Below are positions 1 to 59,662 of a DNA stretch of 64,000 bases, one piece after another (the stretch's first letter is position 1; every line of letters begins with the position of its first letter). A program made the translations under genes and the position numbers. The notes under the pieces are model-generated. The model was not told where the DNA came from, searched no databases, and saw only the letters and a program-made list of their open reading frames with translations. The DNA is from Auanema rhodensis (lineage: Eukaryota > Animalia > Nematoda): assembly GCA_964057225.1 (NCBI GenBank), contig OZ059897.1, forward strand, positions 15,066,001-15,130,000, given 5' to 3'.

Positions 1-85
1 TACATCAGGCTCTATGGCAGCGTATACATCCCATACCAAATACGGCGATGCAGTTAGTTCTGTTCAGAGAAAACAGTGAATCTTT

Positions 86-269
86 GAAATCATACTACAC
101 AGAATCATTTCTGTAGTTTGTATTTCACATTCCCTTTTAAACTTCGACACATGTTGACCGCGGTGAAAGGGTAATGAGCAGGTTGCGAGCGTGAAGAACT
201 TCTTCGGAAGTTGATGACCGCGAGCTAGCCGGCAACGGAAAGCTTTTGTAATCTGCTCATCTGAGCGGT
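86..269 (+). ncRNA. U3: U3 snoRNA (copy 1)
   Basis: Box A'/A ATACTACACAGAATCATTTCTGTAG (box A 102-116), box B GAGCGTGAAG (187-196), box C TGATGA (212-217), box D CTGA (261-264). Terminal stem ACCGC/GCGGT, stem ATGAGCAGGTTGC/GTAATCTGCTCAT, hairpins AACTTC-TTCG-GAAGTT and CCG-GCAA-CGG. The 5' end is approximate. Confidence 0.9.
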
Positions 270-456
270 TTTAATCGGTTAATCATCAAGGAAACTGAAA
301 GAGTTTCAACTGGACTTCACTTCTTCGACTTTCTTGTATCACTCCCCATGCTGCTTACGGCTCTGTCAGGCTACATCAGGCTCTATGGCAGCGTATACAT
401 CCCATACCAAATACGGCGATGCAGTTAGTTCTGTTCAGAGAAAACAGTGAATCTTT

Positions 457-640
457 GAAATCATACTACACAGAATCATTTCTGTAGTTTGTATTTCACA
501 TTCCCTTTTAAACTTCGACACATGTTGACCGCGGTGAAAGGGTAATGAGCAGGTTGCGAGCGTGAAGAACTTCTTCGGAAGTTGATGACCGCGAGCTAGC
601 CGGCAACGGAAAGCTTTTGTAATCTGCTCATCTGAGCGGT
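457..640 (+). ncRNA. U3: U3 snoRNA (copy 2)
   Basis: Identical to copy 1, offset 371. Confidence 0.9.
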
Positions 641-827
641 TTTAATCGGTTAATCATCAAGGAAACTGAAAGAGTTTCAACTGGACTTCACTTCTTCGAC
701 TTTCTTGTATCACTCCCCATGCTGCTTACGGCTCTGTCAGGCTACATCAGGCTCTATGGCAGCGTATACATCCCATACCAAATACGGCGATGCAGTTAGT
801 TCTGTTCAGAGAAAACAGTGAATCTTT

Positions 828-1011
828 GAAATCATACTACACAGAATCATTTCTGTAGTTTGTATTTCACATTCCCTTTTAAACTTCGACACATGTTGAC
901 CGCGGTGAAAGGGTAATGAGCAGGTTGCGAGCGTGAAGAACTTCTTCGGAAGTTGATGACCGCGAGCTAGCCGGCAACGGAAAGCTTTTGTAATCTGCTC
1001 ATCTGAGCGGT
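828..1011 (+). ncRNA. U3: U3 snoRNA (copy 3)
   Basis: Identical to copy 1. Confidence 0.9.
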
Positions 1012-1198
1012 TTTAATCGGTTAATCATCAAGGAAACTGAAAGAGTTTCAACTGGACTTCACTTCTTCGACTTTCTTGTATCACTCCCCATGCTGCTTAC
1101 GGCTCTGTCAGGCTACATCAGGCTCTATGGCAGCGTATACATCCCATACCAAATACGGCGATGCAGTTAGTTCTGTTCAGAGAAAACAGTGAATCTTT

Positions 1199-1382
1199 GA
1201 AATCATACTACACAGAATCATTTCTGTAGTTTGTATTTCACATTCCCTTTTAAACTTCGACACATGTTGACCGCGGTGAAAGGGTAATGAGCAGGTTGCG
1301 AGCGTGAAGAACTTCTTCGGAAGTTGATGACCGCGAGCTAGCCGGCAACGGAAAGCTTTTGTAATCTGCTCATCTGAGTGGT
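1199..1382 (+). ncRNA. U3: U3 snoRNA (copy 4, variant B)
   Basis: As copy 1 except C>T at 1379 in the terminal stem (G-C becomes G.U). Confidence 0.9.
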
Positions 1383-1569
1383 TTTAAACGGTTAATCATT
1401 AAGGAAACTGAAAGAGTTTCAACTGGACTTCACTTCTTCGACCTTCTTGCATCACTCCCCATGCTGCTTACGGCTCTGTTAGGCTACATCAGGCTCTATG
1501 GCAGCGTATACATCCCATACCAAATACGGCGATGCAGTTAGTTCTGTTCAGAGAAAACAGTGAATCTTT

Positions 1570-1753
1570 GAAATCATACTACACAGAATCATTTCTGTAG
1601 TTTGTATTTCACATTCCCTTTTAAACTTCGACACATGTTGACCGCGGTGAAAGGGTAATGAGCAGGTTGCGAGCGTGAAGAACTTCTTCGGAAGTTGATG
1701 ACCGCGAGCTAGCCGGCAACGGAAAGCTTTTGTAATCTGCTCATCTGAGCGGT
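1570..1753 (+). ncRNA. U3: U3 snoRNA (copy 5)
   Basis: Identical to copy 1. Confidence 0.9.
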
Positions 1754-1940
1754 TTTAATCGGTTAATCATCAAGGAAACTGAAAGAGTTTCAACTGGACT
1801 TCACTTCTTCGACTTTCTTGTATCACTCCCCATGCTGCTTACGGCTCTGTCAGGCTACATCAGGCTCTATGGCAGCGTATACATCCCATACCAAATACGG
1901 CGATGCAGTTAGTTCTGTTCAGAGAAAACAGTGAATCTTT

Positions 1941-2124
1941 GAAATCATACTACACAGAATCATTTCTGTAGTTTGTATTTCACATTCCCTTTTAAACTTC
2001 GACACATGTTGACCGCGGTGAAAGGGTAATGAGCAGGTTGCGAGCGTGAAGAACTTCTTCGGAAGTTGATGACCGCGAGCTAGCCGGCAACGGAAAGCTT
2101 TTGTAATCTGCTCATCTGAGTGGT
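1941..2124 (+). ncRNA. U3: U3 snoRNA (copy 6, variant B)
   Basis: As copy 4 (C>T at 2121). Confidence 0.9.
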
Positions 2125-2435
2125 TTTAAACGGTTAATCATTAAGGAAACTGAAAGAGTTTCAACTGGACTTCACTTCTTCGACCTTCTTGCATCACTCC
2201 CTATGCTGCTTACGGCTCTGTTAGGCTACATCAGGCTGTATGGCTTCCGTTGCTTTCTGTTATTTCCATTACTGAGTTCACTATCTAAAACTGCTATCCA
2301 GTGTAATGTTTGCAAGAAATGAGCATAGCAACCCTTTTATTATATTCCATGTTAATAGCTTTCACAGAAAAGGCCTACGAAATGAGAAATGAGCATAGCA
2401 ACCTTCCATGTTTACAACTGCAGTATTCTATCTTC

Positions 2436-4111
2436 ATGTCCCGGCCGATTGCTAGAACTATTAGTTCTAGACCCATCCCGTCAAGTACTTCAAAATCTGC
2501 TAAATCTTTTAAAGATAAGCAAAATGCCGGACAAGTCAGTACTGCTGATGCTACTAAAGACAGGAAAAATATAATTACATCCAACAGTTCTATAGCTCCA
2601 GTGAAGAAAACTGGCGATCAAGAAATAGGTGACTCAAGTGTTATCGAAGAACTTCGGTGGAAGACGTTAGTGCTGGGTCACCACTACCCGGAGGATTTCG
2701 ATTCTGGTCGTTGGATTTCATTACCAGGGTAAAAATTCTTTAAGCTATTGATTAAATTAATAAATTAAATTCATTTTACAGAGATAGCTATCCCATTGAT
2801 ATCGTAATAGGATTAGAACAAGTTTGTAATGTGTATAAAGTATTACTTGAAGTAGACGATAATCTTTTACGTGAGATTAACTGTTTTCCTTGTTTTTTAA
2901 ATAGATTAATGATCTTTAGCTTCAAAGGTTGATATATCAGTTGGACTAGGAGATGCTACACTACCAATAACATACAAAAACGCAAGAGAAGCCAATTTCA
3001 AAAGACCTGTTACGATGGAATATTTTAAAAGAGAACGAAGTCGCAGTCGAATGGAAACGAAGTTGAAGTTATTATGGAAATTGCTTTTTTCAACATTTCC
3101 ATTTAAGAACTGCTTTTATGGACAAAATTGGACAATATCTCTGGCTTCAAATTAATGAACCACTTAAACATCTTAATAATAAAACTGGACAGGTACATAA
3201 CTATATGTATTCTATTCATTTCAATGTTACGCAACAATTATGTATGAAATTTCATTCAAAGTCATTTGATTGCAGATTAAAATACTGAATTTAACCATTT
3301 TGGGATATCGGATAGTTGGAGATGAATACAAGGAAATGTTGAAAAAAACAACGTATTTTATATTAAAAAATCGATATTTAAATGTTGTAGTAATTTTACA
3401 ATTGAAGGATTGACGGATTTCGACCAAATACTCGTGACGGAGAAGAATACGAATTATATAATGAAATGGCAAGAAATATTATTGAAGAACCTAAGGAAAG
3501 TAGTGTTATAACTAGGCATAGCTAGTAAGAATTAGTATCATGAAGCTTCAAAATACCTAACTTTTAAAGCAATGGAGATGGTTTAGTTACTACGTCAAAT
3601 TTGCTGGCATCCGATCCCTTGACAACGCTGCGGACTGTTAAAAATACTCTAGAACAGAAAAGAGATACGGCAAAACGAGTAGGCGTAATAGGTTTTAGTT
3701 ATGTAATTGCAATGTTGAAGAATGGACGTGATGTCGAAGCAACAGTTTGTCATAGAGCTATTCAACGTCTTCTCGAATATGAGGTTATGGTTGAAGATTT
3801 GCATACAAGAAGGAGTAATGCACTTGTCCATGGGGATCTGATAATGGTAAAATCAAATTTGTTAGAAATATGATTCTTCATAAAGAGTTATTTCAAGGCA
3901 GAACGTCATCGTCTAGCCATGGTTGATTGTAGAGACACGGCACTTCGATCCACCCATGTTGATTTACTATTAGACAGAGCAGAAGTAAGTTATGTGTAAC
4001 AGAATTTTCTAAGAACATGTTAACCATATCAATTGATTTGATTCACGCTTATACAATAAGTTTTAGCTGAGAGCCATAGGAGCATCATCTGAATGGTCTG
4101 AGAAGCAGTAG
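2436..4111 (+). CDS. cep-104: CEP104-like centrosomal/ciliary protein, multi-exon, N-terminal region plus coiled coil only
   Basis: Spliced peptides GRWISLP..YPIDIVIGLEQVCNVYKVLL, LWLQINEPLKHLNNKTGQIKILNLTILG and DPLTTLRTVKNTLEQKRDTAKR..RLLEYEVMVEDLHTRRSNALVHGDLIMAERHRLAM resemble the CEP104 N-terminal domain and coiled coil. Stop TAG at 4109-4111. Confidence 0.6.
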
Positions 4112-10300: not shown

Positions 10301-13300
10301 CTTTGAATTTTGATAATGAATGAACTACAGTGTCCACGTCAACCAGGATGGGCTCCATGTATTACGAAAGATCAAGCCAACGATCGATTCCGCAACTGTT
10401 GTGCCCGATTAGGAGAAGGGTGTGTTCCTCTTTGCAATTATGATGCCACATTAGCCACGGTAAGAAGCCTTCTATATTCTTGTTCAAATCAAAGACTGCT
10501 TTCAGATGCAACTGGCTGTCTTGACCGGGCGTTGTCCTCTGAACAAGGTGGCCGATATGATGATATGCGCATCAGGATATCAAGATGCCACTCCCTGCTG
10601 CGAAGCCTATAACGTCTTTGAACCAGGATATGAACATTGCCGTCCTTATTGTAATCCAGCCGCGGGATTACCGCAAGGAGGATTGCTATCAGAAAAATAC
10701 AAGTGTCTTGTTAAGTTGGGTGCCATTCAGCAGTGCTTCTACGTATCTCAAAAACCATAGATACTGATTAATTTTTGAATGTGTTTTGCGAGTCCTTATT
10801 TCTCAGAAGAGTTGTCTTTCCTTACCGTAAATCAATCCAGGCGTGCAATAAGAGCTATATCTATCTCTTAGGTTATATCAAGTTTTCTCATGATATGTTA
10901 ATTAAGCAAAGATATCATATAATAAATTCTGACAAATTTTAAGTGTCTTAAATAAAGTTTCTAAATAAACTTACTGTTGAAAAACTCCTGTATCATTCAG
11001 AATATTAATTCCTTCATTTTGAGAGGAATATGCCCCGATCAACGAGAATATATACATCGATCCTCCATATGATAGATTTTTCACAGAAAACACGTTTTGA
11101 CCTTGGCAAAGCTGAAGCAAAATATTAGGCTTTCCATGGCATATATACTCACATTATCAAGAGCAATTTTGAACTCTTGAGCATAAGATTCTAAAGTTTC
11201 CATTAATAATGGATAGTCCGAACAAAGTTGGAGTGAAAATAGAATAGCATTACGAACACAAACAAATAGAAGTTTGTTTGAATTAATGCCCCATGATGGT
11301 TGAAGCCCGTTCGCAACACTAACTTCAGAAAGTAGCTGAAAAGAGAAAGCATAAGCACAGTATATTTCGTGCTCAAACCTTAACAAAAATTGCATTTATA
11401 CTTTCTACTTTATCGACACGTCTAGCTGTATCAACGTCATCAAGCAGAGAAGTATACAATAGAGAAACAACTTTTAAATTCAAAGAATCTCCTTTCCAAC
11501 AGCTTTCAATTAATGATTGATGATCACTTCTATCTACAAACCTTTGGTAAGAAAGGATAAATCACAGCATTGAGATACCTTTTTTCCATACAGAGGAAGA
11601 ATTAGAAGAATCTCGCGAAATATGAAGAAATAATGAATAATTAGAATCAGCGGCAGGCTTGCGTGAAGCATTTTGAATCGCAACCGTATTCAGTACATCA
11701 AATCTGTGATGAACTAATTCAGCACTTCTATAATCGGTTCATTTCAAAATTGAGTTATCAAAAAAATAATTACTGAGCATTAATGAATGTATACACAGGC
11801 TCGAGAGATTCGTTCAACTCATGATTTGCGTTTCCTGGTTTATTAATAGCTAAAGCTTCACAAGCGCTCTGAATTAAAGTAGGTAATGAAAGTATACTAG
11901 AACTCCACGAATTTGGCACAATTGAAGGAGCCTGAAATGATTTATAATGCTTTAAATTTTTTAACTTTTCAAATTGAGAATGTATTAGCGTAGGATCGAC
12001 GCACCGTATTTAACATATCTGCCATCAAAAGAGTGGCTTTAATTCCACTAGGGGCATCAGGTTGCGCAACAATTAGTCTAGAAAGGGCTTGTGGAAGCCC
12101 TGCGTTAATTAAAGCAAAAAAGGCAAAAGCGCGGAAAGAACTTAGAAGATCAACATGATTACAAAACTCCTGAAGCCAAAAATATAAAAAGGAAAAAACT
12201 ATTTGATTTTACCGAAGAGTAACGCATAATAATATCATTCTGCGCCAACACAAAATCTTCTTTCAACGATGATTCATAAGAATCGGGAGACGTCATAGAT
12301 CCTATCCAAACATCATGAACTTTTAAAAAAAAATTGAATAGTGTTACCATAGAAAGAAACTGCTTCATCCCAATCTTTAAATTTTCTGGAACTGTAAGGC
12401 AAATCCATGAATTCACAACAGAAATCCACAATCATATCTCTAATACGCCGTAGGTTTGCGTTTTCTACAGTACCCAAACCCAGATATTCTAATAATCTAC
12501 AGAAAGCAATATGATCATAATATGAAAAACTAAATATTGAAACCTTAACGGAGAAGAAGAAATAATAGTATTGTTGGGTCCTACAGCAGAACAAGCTATT
12601 AAACCCGGCCATGATCTCAGAATACACAGAAAAGAATTAGAAAAATTCTCCATGACTCTTTCAACTTCTCGTTCAGCACTAAGATATTAAAGATTCAATA
12701 GTAATTTTGAACTACTCACATTTCTGAAGGTAAAGATGTTTTTTGAAAAAATCCAAACTCGATTAGAGGAGCAAAAATTTGCTTCAAAACATATATTAAG
12801 AAACTTTACAGTTAGAAAGCAAACTTCAAGAACCAGATGTAGCTGAGCTTTTACTCTTACAATTGGATCGTCTAGCCAATGTATAAGTATTCTGCCAACC
12901 ATTGTAGCTAATCTTCGACTCACTTTAGCTGCGCCAGTTAGAACTCGAACCTATAATCCTATTTTCATAAGATATATTGGTATATATATATATCCAACCA
13001 TCCAATCTGTTCCTGCCATATTCAGAATATGACAGGGCTCATATATACAAAATTCCAGAAAGGTTGCAATACATGGCAAAGCTAACCTAGAATTTCACAG
13101 GTGAAAATATTTCTCATTGAACTTAGATAAAAGAATATACCTGTCATAATCACTGTGATAATGCTGACCAGTGTTGGGCTGCACTTCAGTATTACTATTA
13201 TCTTCCTTATCGATAACTCCTGTTATATTGATGGCAGATAAGGCAATCGCAATTACAGGCTGCATAACTGACCGCGGAAACGCATATTTTCTTCAAAAGT

Positions 13301-58034: not shown

Positions 58035-59662
58035 CGTTTCATGTCAATGCCATTGATCTGCCTTTAACGTAATGAAAGCAAGCGAAACGATTCTTGCCTA
58101 TAATGGCTTGAAAATACAAAGAAAGGCAATTGATTATCGAAAGTTATATTATATTTAATTATATATGATATAATTAAGTTGTCACATTGCTTTAGCTTAT
58201 TTATTTCACTTCCCTGCTTATACTCTCACTATATCGCGCGTACTCTGTATTCGTATAATCGTAGTGCTGGAAAACATTTTTCTTTTTTTAGAAAAATGAT
58301 ATGATATACGGTTAGATTATATATAAACATAACTATTACTATATATATTTATTCATCATCATTTATTCTTTATATATTCTGTTTGAATTATTACTATTGA
58401 GTTGGTGAATATTCTCTATCTGACTTACCCTCATTTTCCACTCTTTTCGTTTCTGGTAGATTAATAGCTTCTTGTTGAGTGATGATGGAAGAAGAAAAAG
58501 AAGAAGCTGTAGCCATCTTTGCTTCTTCTTCTTCTTCTTCATCATTATCATCATCATCGTCACCGCTTTCTTATATATATATGAATCTGGATGCTGATTG
58601 CTAATGAACCTCATCCGAAACAATGAATGAATTTCATCAAAATTCAGCTATTTTCGAACGAAAAAAATTTCCTTTCTTACTATAAATATAATTTTAACTC
58701 AATTTGTCAATATCTTGTAAAAATTTTCTTATACGTTTTCCTATTTCGATTTCCATATACTATGATCAGATAGACAGCAGCAACGGGTTGCGAGGCAACG
58801 CTTCTCGAAATACAATCTACTTTTATATCAAATCCATTTTCATTTAGATATTTCTTCATAAAAGACGGAAAGAACAGAAAGAAATAATATGAGAGAAAGA
58901 GAGAAGAGAAACAGTTAAATGAAGTAGTGCTAGTTGAAAAAGGAACAAATTCAACAAATTCTGTTTGGAACTGTATTCATTCATTTCTATATATTATATA
59001 ATTGTATTTGATTTATATGTGCTTTTTTTTGTTTTTTTAATCAAATATAATTCAAGAAATAATTCAATTATGATCTTTGAGTCTCTTTCATCATCAGCTG
59101 ATTAACTGAAATCTGTATAAGAAGCCTTATGCAAACAAGATTCTATTTTTTTTTCTATTTATACATATAACTAACTAACTACATTATCATTTTGTATATG
59201 AAAAATCACGTTTTTCTTCTTTTTATTAACTTTTATTCCTACTTATATTATTATTATTATTATTTCTATTCATTCAATCTTTTTATATTATCTCATTCTA
59301 ACAATTCGACTTGAAACTTATAATTTCTTGTTGAATGCTATTGAATGGCTTTTCATCTTTTACTATTATTCTATTATTATTTATTAGATTTTATATATTT
59401 ATATTATATAAAACATATTTTTATTTTATTACTCACTTAATCCTTTGTTGTTGTTGTTGTTTTTTTTTTTGAAATGTATTGATTTTTTTGTTTTTTAATC
59501 AGTTCTTTTATCAGCATCTCATGAAGAACTTGCTGATTATTTAAAGTTCATTTCGAATATATTTGTTTTATCATTTTCTTTTATTTTTCTTCTCTTAAAC
59601 AGCATTATTCGAACTTCTTCTATTTAAGCCTAAATGCGTCATTCCATCAGTGACATTTGGTA

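Follow-up and report, generated by a model that had tools for sequence, protein, structure and literature searches.

Tandem arrays of U3 small nucleolar RNA genes, with a putative promoter in front of each copy, in a nematode genome

Results

Organization of the U3 array

The stretch of DNA analysed here, called the window, is 64 kb long and belongs to one contig (G000:C5:15066001-15130000) of a 181-Mb assembly of 112 contigs. Its left end is occupied by tandem genes for the U3 small nucleolar RNA (snoRNA). Positions 1-2244 form the sole long-period array of the window, for which Tandem Repeats Finder gave a period of 371, 6.0 copies, 98% matches and 0 indels. Exactly six Rfam matches were obtained for the window with cmscan at gathering thresholds. 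All are with U3 (RF00012), on the plus strand and over the full length of the model (1-219), with scores of 82.9-84.5 bits (E ~1e-16) against a gathering score of 34. The repeat consists of intact U3 genes arranged head to tail; the U3 RNA initiates the processing of ribosomal RNA. A preliminary description, made from the sequence alone, had read this 371-bp satellite as tandem U3 snoRNA genes and had proposed a covariance-model search as a check; the scores, far above the gathering score, bear it out. The alternation of about 184 nt of RNA with about 187 nt of spacer that it had proposed also agrees with the cmscan coordinates, which divide the 371-bp unit into 184 nt for the RNA and 187 nt for the spacer. 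It had seen at least six near-identical copies running past the window edge, and indeed 11 further units lie to the left, giving 17 genes in total. The coordinates of these features are listed in Table 1.

Sequence and fold of the U3 RNA

In the covariance-model alignment, boxes A'/A of the 5' domain are followed by boxes C', B, C and D in their proper order, as previously noted for boxes A'/A, B, C and D, and the terminal stem is aligned as well. The region of boxes A'/A, which pairs with 18S ribosomal RNA, has a high posterior probability against the model consensus and is identical, bar one single change, in all 60 copies of the genome described below. The box B and box C motifs, GCGUGAAG and UGAUGA, are exact consensus. 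Box D (CUGA) can be recognised, as can the terminal stem. Box C' (GUGAAAG) keeps only the first UGA and departs from the UGAUGA consensus. RNAalifold, run on the two array variants together with two diverged paralogs, predicted 59 pairs, with compensatory double changes in 4 and several one-sided G-U-compatible changes. In one paralog the pairing of the box B/C hairpin is kept by two compensatory changes (pairs 115/124 and 116/123). Both the TTCG and the GCAA loop hairpins of the preliminary description were seen in this fold. The compensatory changes in the paralogs imply that the U3 family evolved under the U3 fold. Two metagenome contigs sharing a box A 24-mer were considered as possible relatives and rejected, as they carry unrelated single U3 genes (207 nt, 114 bits). 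These two genes, Ga0222719_10218604 413-619 (-) and Ga0102948_1054880 586-792 (+), are nearly identical to each other and belong to an unrelated eukaryote, the box A 24-mer being all that they have in common with the worm.

U3 genes in the rest of the genome

Further copies were searched for in the whole assembly with a 28-nt box A'/A pattern, allowing up to 2 mismatches and using the reversed pattern as control. The pattern matched at 60 places and the control at none. Together with the E-values, this excludes a chance origin of the U3 matches. The genome holds at least 60 U3 genes, 57 in three arrays and 3 as singles, and 44 covariance-model matches were scored genome-wide. The three arrays, here called A (6.3 kb, the one that reaches into the window), B (12.4 kb) and C (2.2 kb), lie within about 250 kb of one contig, and the spacing between genes is exactly 371 bp in 54 of 54 cases. 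Array A is flanked on both sides by unique DNA, which argues against a simple assembly artefact. Its last spacer is broken off about 30 bp before the expected start of the next promoter element.

At least 58 of the genes are near-identical, array-type copies, including one of the singles (C5:14799809). The second promoter element behind this solo copy has a core mutated from ATACGG to ATACAG, and the locus resembles what is left of two units from an array edge after decay. The two other singles differ from the array type at more than 15 positions and could be tissue- or stage-specific U3 variants.

Variation between units

The 54 internal units were aligned in register. The RNA part contains 7 variable sites, only one of which is shared by more than one unit (diversity 0.0033), while the spacer contains 38, of which 30 are shared (diversity 0.046). 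The difference in variable sites is significant (Fisher p = 7.7e-7), and the RNA is about 14 times less variable. As whole units are homogenised, selection on the RNA is the best explanation for such a gap within the unit. Position 181 is the sole site of a common RNA variant: C there pairs with G in the terminal stem (pair 75/181), while T turns this G-C pair into G.U, so that the pairing is kept. As many as 51 of the 57 array copies carry one or the other of two sequences with no difference beyond this change. The singleton variants number six; three of them, at positions 6, 114 and 140, are transitions that leave the pairing intact, and another, at position 42, falls in an unpaired region.

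Per 371 bp, units of the same array differ on average by 4.4, 6.0 and 3.4 positions in the three arrays, and units of different arrays by 11.3-15.2; the similarity is a little greater between adjacent units than between distant ones. Such a pattern is the signature of local unequal exchange, i.e. of the concerted evolution that the preliminary description had proposed for these homogenised repeats. The first units of arrays A and B have a version of the promoter element that is nearer to that of the single copies than to that of the internal units. This shared version indicates that array edges escape homogenisation, and a single array that was duplicated is the probable source of A and B.

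Promoter element

A weight matrix was made from 13 distinct non-U3 sites, taken from the promoters of the U1, U2, U4, U5, U6 and SL1 genes of the same genome, and was scanned over both strands of the window (127,964 positions). Ranks 1-6 went to the six sites upstream of the U3 genes, each with 21.9 bits and all at exactly -57. The element, a proximal sequence element (PSE) of the small nuclear RNA (snRNA) type, is bipartite at the U3 genes and 19-21 bp long, with the approximate form CCCATA, 4-5 nt, ATACGG. A related bipartite element (approximately ACCCATA, 4 nt, ATACGG) is found upstream of the U1, U2, U4, U5, U6 and SL1 genes, starting at -55 to -58 in U1, U2, U4 and SL1, at -60 in the arrayed U5 genes and at -61 to -65 in U6. 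The first units of arrays A and B, which have unique upstream DNA, and the three single genes carry the same element at -57/-58 with 19.6-27.1 bits, and it is the one conserved upstream block when they are aligned with the other units. Within the arrays, the element falls in unit positions 311-334, the longest stretch of the spacer without variation. No TATA-like element is present between it and the U3 start. Each unit would accordingly possess its own promoter of the type bound by the SNAPc complex.

The next-best matrix site of the window (3654, 17.0 bits) lies inside a coding exon and was rejected as a promoter. Another site, at 58295-58313 (+) with 14.0 bits, was rejected as a small-RNA promoter, no Rfam gene being found after it. 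About 170 nt past this site, a near-perfect palindromic hairpin (58470-58560) gives sub-threshold microRNA-like Rfam matches on both strands, the best with 29.6 bits against a gathering score of 69.

3' end of the genes

A TTTT tract stands straight behind the 3' terminal GGU in 60 of 60 copies, even in the paralogs, the flanks of which cannot otherwise be aligned. It may be a site for a precursor-stabilising protein or a terminator of RNA polymerase III (Pol III). The second-longest invariant block of the spacer (unit positions 211-224, window 296-309 and its repeats) overlaps a motif of the form GAAAGAGTTTC, and similar AAGAG/AGTTTC motifs are present downstream of the U1 genes and of the U3 paralogs. 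This motif, about 25 nt downstream of the RNA, is suggestive of a 3'-end formation signal (candidate 3' box).

Table 1. Features of the U3 array and its surroundings (window positions) and of small-RNA genes elsewhere in the assembly (contig:position)
Feature	Position	Strand	Evidence or remark
Right-hand 6 units of 17-unit array, unit exactly 371 bp	1..2244	+	Tandem Repeats Finder, pattern search, unit spacing
U3 snoRNA gene, 184 nt, C at RNA position 181	86..269	+	RF00012, 84.5 bits, model 1-219
U3 snoRNA gene, C181 variant	457..640	+	RF00012, 84.5 bits
U3 snoRNA gene, C181 variant	828..1011	+	RF00012, 84.5 bits
U3 snoRNA gene, T181 variant (commonest genome-wide)	1199..1382	+	RF00012, 82.9 bits; variant pair 75/181
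U3 snoRNA gene, C181 variant	1570..1753	+	RF00012, 84.5 bits
U3 snoRNA gene, T181 variant, last gene of the array	1941..2124	+	RF00012, 82.9 bits
PSE (snRNA-type), start -57	29..47, 400-418, 771-789, 1142-1160, 1513-1531, 1884-1902	+	Matrix, 21.9 bits
TTTT tract at RNA 3' end	269..272, every 371 bp	+	Alignments
Candidate 3' box, 22-38 nt past RNA end	291..307, 662-678, 1033-1049, 1404-1420, 1775-1791, 2146-2162	+	Overlaps invariant block
Right junction of array with unique DNA	2238..2244		Sequence, alignment of 17th unit
First exon of neighbouring gene, outside array	2436..2729	+	ATG at 2436, donor GT at 2730
Array A, 17 genes	genes C5:15062005-15068124; whole array C5:~15061948-15068244	+	Starts 4 kb left of window
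Array B, 34 genes	C5:14948452-14960878	-	Pattern search
Array C, 6 genes	near C5:15.20 Mb	-	Pattern search
Single U3 gene, array type (solo)	C5:14799809-14799992	-	Full spacer, then second promoter element without gene
Single U3 gene, diverged paralog, 183 nt	C5:8624279-8624461		RF00012, 77.9 bits; plus strand
Single U3 gene, diverged paralog, 183 nt	C4:16487323-16487505		RF00012, 84.7 bits; minus strand
U1 array	C3:15.86-16.08 Mb		Period 727 bp
U2 array	C1:10.96-11.28 Mb, also C8		Period ~2.46 kb
U4 array	C4:15.50-15.56 Mb		Period ~472-490 bp
U5 array	C8:10.43-10.53 Mb		Period 371/366 bp
U6 array	C1:6.375-6.386 Mb		Period 226 bp
SL1-like array	C3:6.74-7.10 Mb		Multiples of 252 bp

Other small-RNA genes and neighbouring features

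Every small-RNA class examined besides U3 (U1, U2, U4, U5, U6 and SL1) is also present in long tandem arrays in this genome, and all these arrayed classes share the upstream element, about 55-65 bp before the gene. The U3 array is one instance of a genome-wide habit, and U3 is not special here. A kinship of the U3 and U5 arrays, suggested by their common 371-bp unit, was rejected: BLAST found only a 17-nt match (E 0.8) and the period is coincidental. The arrayed U6 genes (C1:6375156-6386113) have an unusual 5' stem-loop, GCUCA GAAA UGAGC, the usual one being GUGCUCGCUUCGGCAGCAC.

No Pfam match was found for the first exon (2436..2729) of the gene that follows the array. An exact 17-mer, AAATGAGCATAGCAACC, occurs twice on the plus strand between the array end and the ATG of this gene (2317-2333 and 2387-2403, 70 bp apart), with none expected by chance. 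With its flanking bases it has 13 nt in common with the 5' stem-loop of the U6 of this genome; a promoter motif and a fragment derived from U6 are both conceivable. Further into the window, the exon 10506-10757 (+) encodes a DB module (PF01682, E 7.4e-10), typical of nematode proteins. The SL1-like RNAs begin with the canonical 22-nt nematode leader, and TTAGGC repeats gave 83 matches in the genome against 0 for the control, while no TTAGG x6 repeats were found in it. The SL1 leader, the TTAGGC repeats and the DB module identify the host as a nematode. An insect host, to which the AT-rich, (TC)n-rich genome might point, was rejected on this evidence and for want of TTAGG x6 repeats. Its ribosomal DNA (rDNA) unit is compact, with 6567 bp and an 18S of 1754 nt (C8:10976050-10980803 and C8:10.98-11.05 Mb). 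The rDNA spacer is very AT-rich with an internal duplication of about 100 bp, and one more 18S copy lies inverted 0.74 Mb away (11.79 Mb, opposite strand).

Discussion

We consider it likely that the window carries a tandem array of working U3 genes in which each 371-bp unit is a self-contained transcription unit. Such a unit would comprise, in this order, the PSE at -57, a TATA-less gap, the 184-nt U3 gene, the TTTT tract, the candidate 3' box about 25 nt further on and some 100 nt of free spacer. The bipartite PSE would recruit the SNAPc complex, and U3 would most likely be transcribed by RNA polymerase II (Pol II) as a capped RNA, as in Caenorhabditis elegans. The array would have grown from a single gene by unequal crossing-over. 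Exchange inside the array would keep the units uniform, and selection on RNA and promoter would purge damaging variants. The two other arrays and the nearby solo copy would share the same ancestor. The outcome would be a high dosage of U3 genes, as with the arrayed U1, U2, U4, U5, U6 and SL1 genes.

Several observations weigh against this picture. The activity of the array genes as U3 genes is deduced from sequence constraint. One unit combines the change U107A in box B with U38A in a stem and another has U130A in box C, so that a few array copies may be impaired. The best duplex of the 5' hinge with the 5' external transcribed spacer of the rDNA, about 100 nt before 18S, has -12.9 kcal/mol and is equalled by 5% of shuffles (p ~0.05), and the pairing of the 3' hinge with the organism's own 5' external transcribed spacer is no better than that of shuffles. 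The invariant 24-nt block over the promoter is, taken alone, only mildly unusual (p ~0.11); for this reason our promoter assignment is based on the independent matrix and not on the block. The copy numbers, including the count of 60, are those of one assembly, which may be collapsed or expanded. Finally, the TTTT directly past the RNA end resembles a Pol III terminator.

This last point leads to the possibility that Pol III transcribes U3 here, as it does in plants. The PSE would then recruit Pol III, TTTT would terminate transcription, and U3 would be uncapped or gamma-methyl-capped. The constancy of TTTT in all copies, even where the flank is unalignable, would fit, as would the U6 genes of this genome, which have the same type of element and a terminal T-run. 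In yeast, however, La/Lsm proteins bind U3 precursors made by Pol II at U-tracts immediately 3' of the RNA. In addition, a TATA-like element is missing between PSE and start, and the spacing of -57 fits U1, U2, U4 and SL1 but not U6, although the arrayed U5 genes with -60 blur this contrast. In C. elegans reporters, Pol III small-RNA transcripts end at the first TTTT (PMC2527325), as this alternative would have it, yet C. elegans U3 has a trimethylguanosine cap, which points to Pol II (PMC2943600). On balance we regard Pol III transcription as unlikely.

Another alternative is that the array is an amplified pseudogene satellite, i.e. that silent or useless copies were spread by unequal crossing-over and that U3 is supplied by the diverged single genes. 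These two separate paralogs have strong promoter elements (21.8 and 27.1 bits) and could suffice, and the box mutations in a few array copies would be in line with decay. A dead satellite, however, would mutate evenly along the unit, in contrast to the 14-fold lower diversity of the RNA. Nor would it account for the coincidence of the longest invariant spacer block with the promoter element, or for the near-uniformity of the array RNAs, most of which are of only two sequences with a pair-preserving difference. This makes the satellite very unlikely, and working array genes remain our preferred explanation. As to how they are transcribed, the preliminary description had left a choice between one mini-promoter per unit and a polycistronic precursor; the latter, one long transcript from a single upstream promoter that is cut into U3 RNAs, has no direct support beyond the closeness of the units and a strong element at the first one (24.5 bits), and is highly improbable since each unit has retained, where its spacer is most conserved, an element of high score at the usual distance, as well as a conserved candidate 3' box behind its gene, which favours a SNAPc-type promoter per unit.

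The presence of U1, U2, U4, U5, U6, SL1 and U3 in arrays raises the question of a common origin. That the seven classes went over from scattered genes, as described for C. elegans, to arrays in one lineage-wide event with a common cause, and not by seven independent neutral amplifications, is a tentative idea that we rather doubt. The common cause could be a mechanism that amplifies units bound by SNAPc, or else selection, be it for very high dosage or for nuclear hubs where small RNAs are made. If the idea were true, the joining of the nucleolar U3 with the spliceosomal RNAs would mark the promoter type, and not the function of the RNA, as the amplified trait. In any case, U3 adds a nucleolar RNA to the small-RNA genes known to be arrayed in this genome. 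The 371-bp unit is also a natural experiment, in which the conserved RNA, the -57 element and the block about 25 nt downstream stand out from drifting parts, and the array thereby shows, with no wet work, where the functional elements of a U3 gene lie in a nematode. It is worth noting that repeat maskers or gene finders would hide or miscount arrays that hold at least 57 of the 60 U3 genes of this worm. These data may be of use for studies of concerted evolution, SNAPc promoters and the dosage of ribosome biogenesis in nematodes, the mechanism itself not being new.

Comparison with known systems

The closest parallel for the promoter is found in C. elegans, whose small RNA genes driven by the PSE (UM1) were reportedly treated by Thomas et al. 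in 1990. As here, these genes, U3 included, have an element of about 21 bp, bipartite and TATA-less, about 55-60 bp upstream, and this type of element is common to snRNA, SL RNA and U3-type genes (PMC2527325; PMC2943600); the likeness is one of architecture and position. The snRNA PSE of C. elegans is a 21-bp bipartite element, mostly without TATA, that is needed for transcription and drives Pol II (PMC2527325). The genomic arrangement is different, since the C. elegans snRNA genes are described as dispersed (bioRxiv 10.64898/2026.08.31.747621), whereas in the present genome U3 and all snRNA classes examined are in long arrays.

Concerning U3 itself, many copies are also known from Euglena gracilis, where at least 14 genes either stand alone or are linked to tRNA or U5 genes; a search there for U3 genes in tandem was negative (PMC2784804). 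The human cluster at 17p11.2, so far as it is described where cited in PMC2784804, consists of a few genes in an inverted repeat, in contrast to the three strictly tandem arrays reported here, with at least 57 genes between them. U3 is single-copy in trypanosomatids (PMC2784804), and Schistosoma possibly has one U3 gene (PMC2770079). We found no report of a U3 tandem array in the open-access literature, subscription papers lying outside this search. The arrangement has its counterparts in the U1 and U2 arrays (human RNU1/RNU2, sea urchin, Xenopus) and in the SL1 arrays of nematodes, which are head-to-tail, with a promoter per unit, concerted evolution and an effect on dosage. The layout is the same here, but the gene is that of U3, a nucleolar box C/D RNA, and the unit is very short (371 bp). 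The U3 tandem array would appear to be a newly seen case of this familiar arrangement of small-RNA genes.

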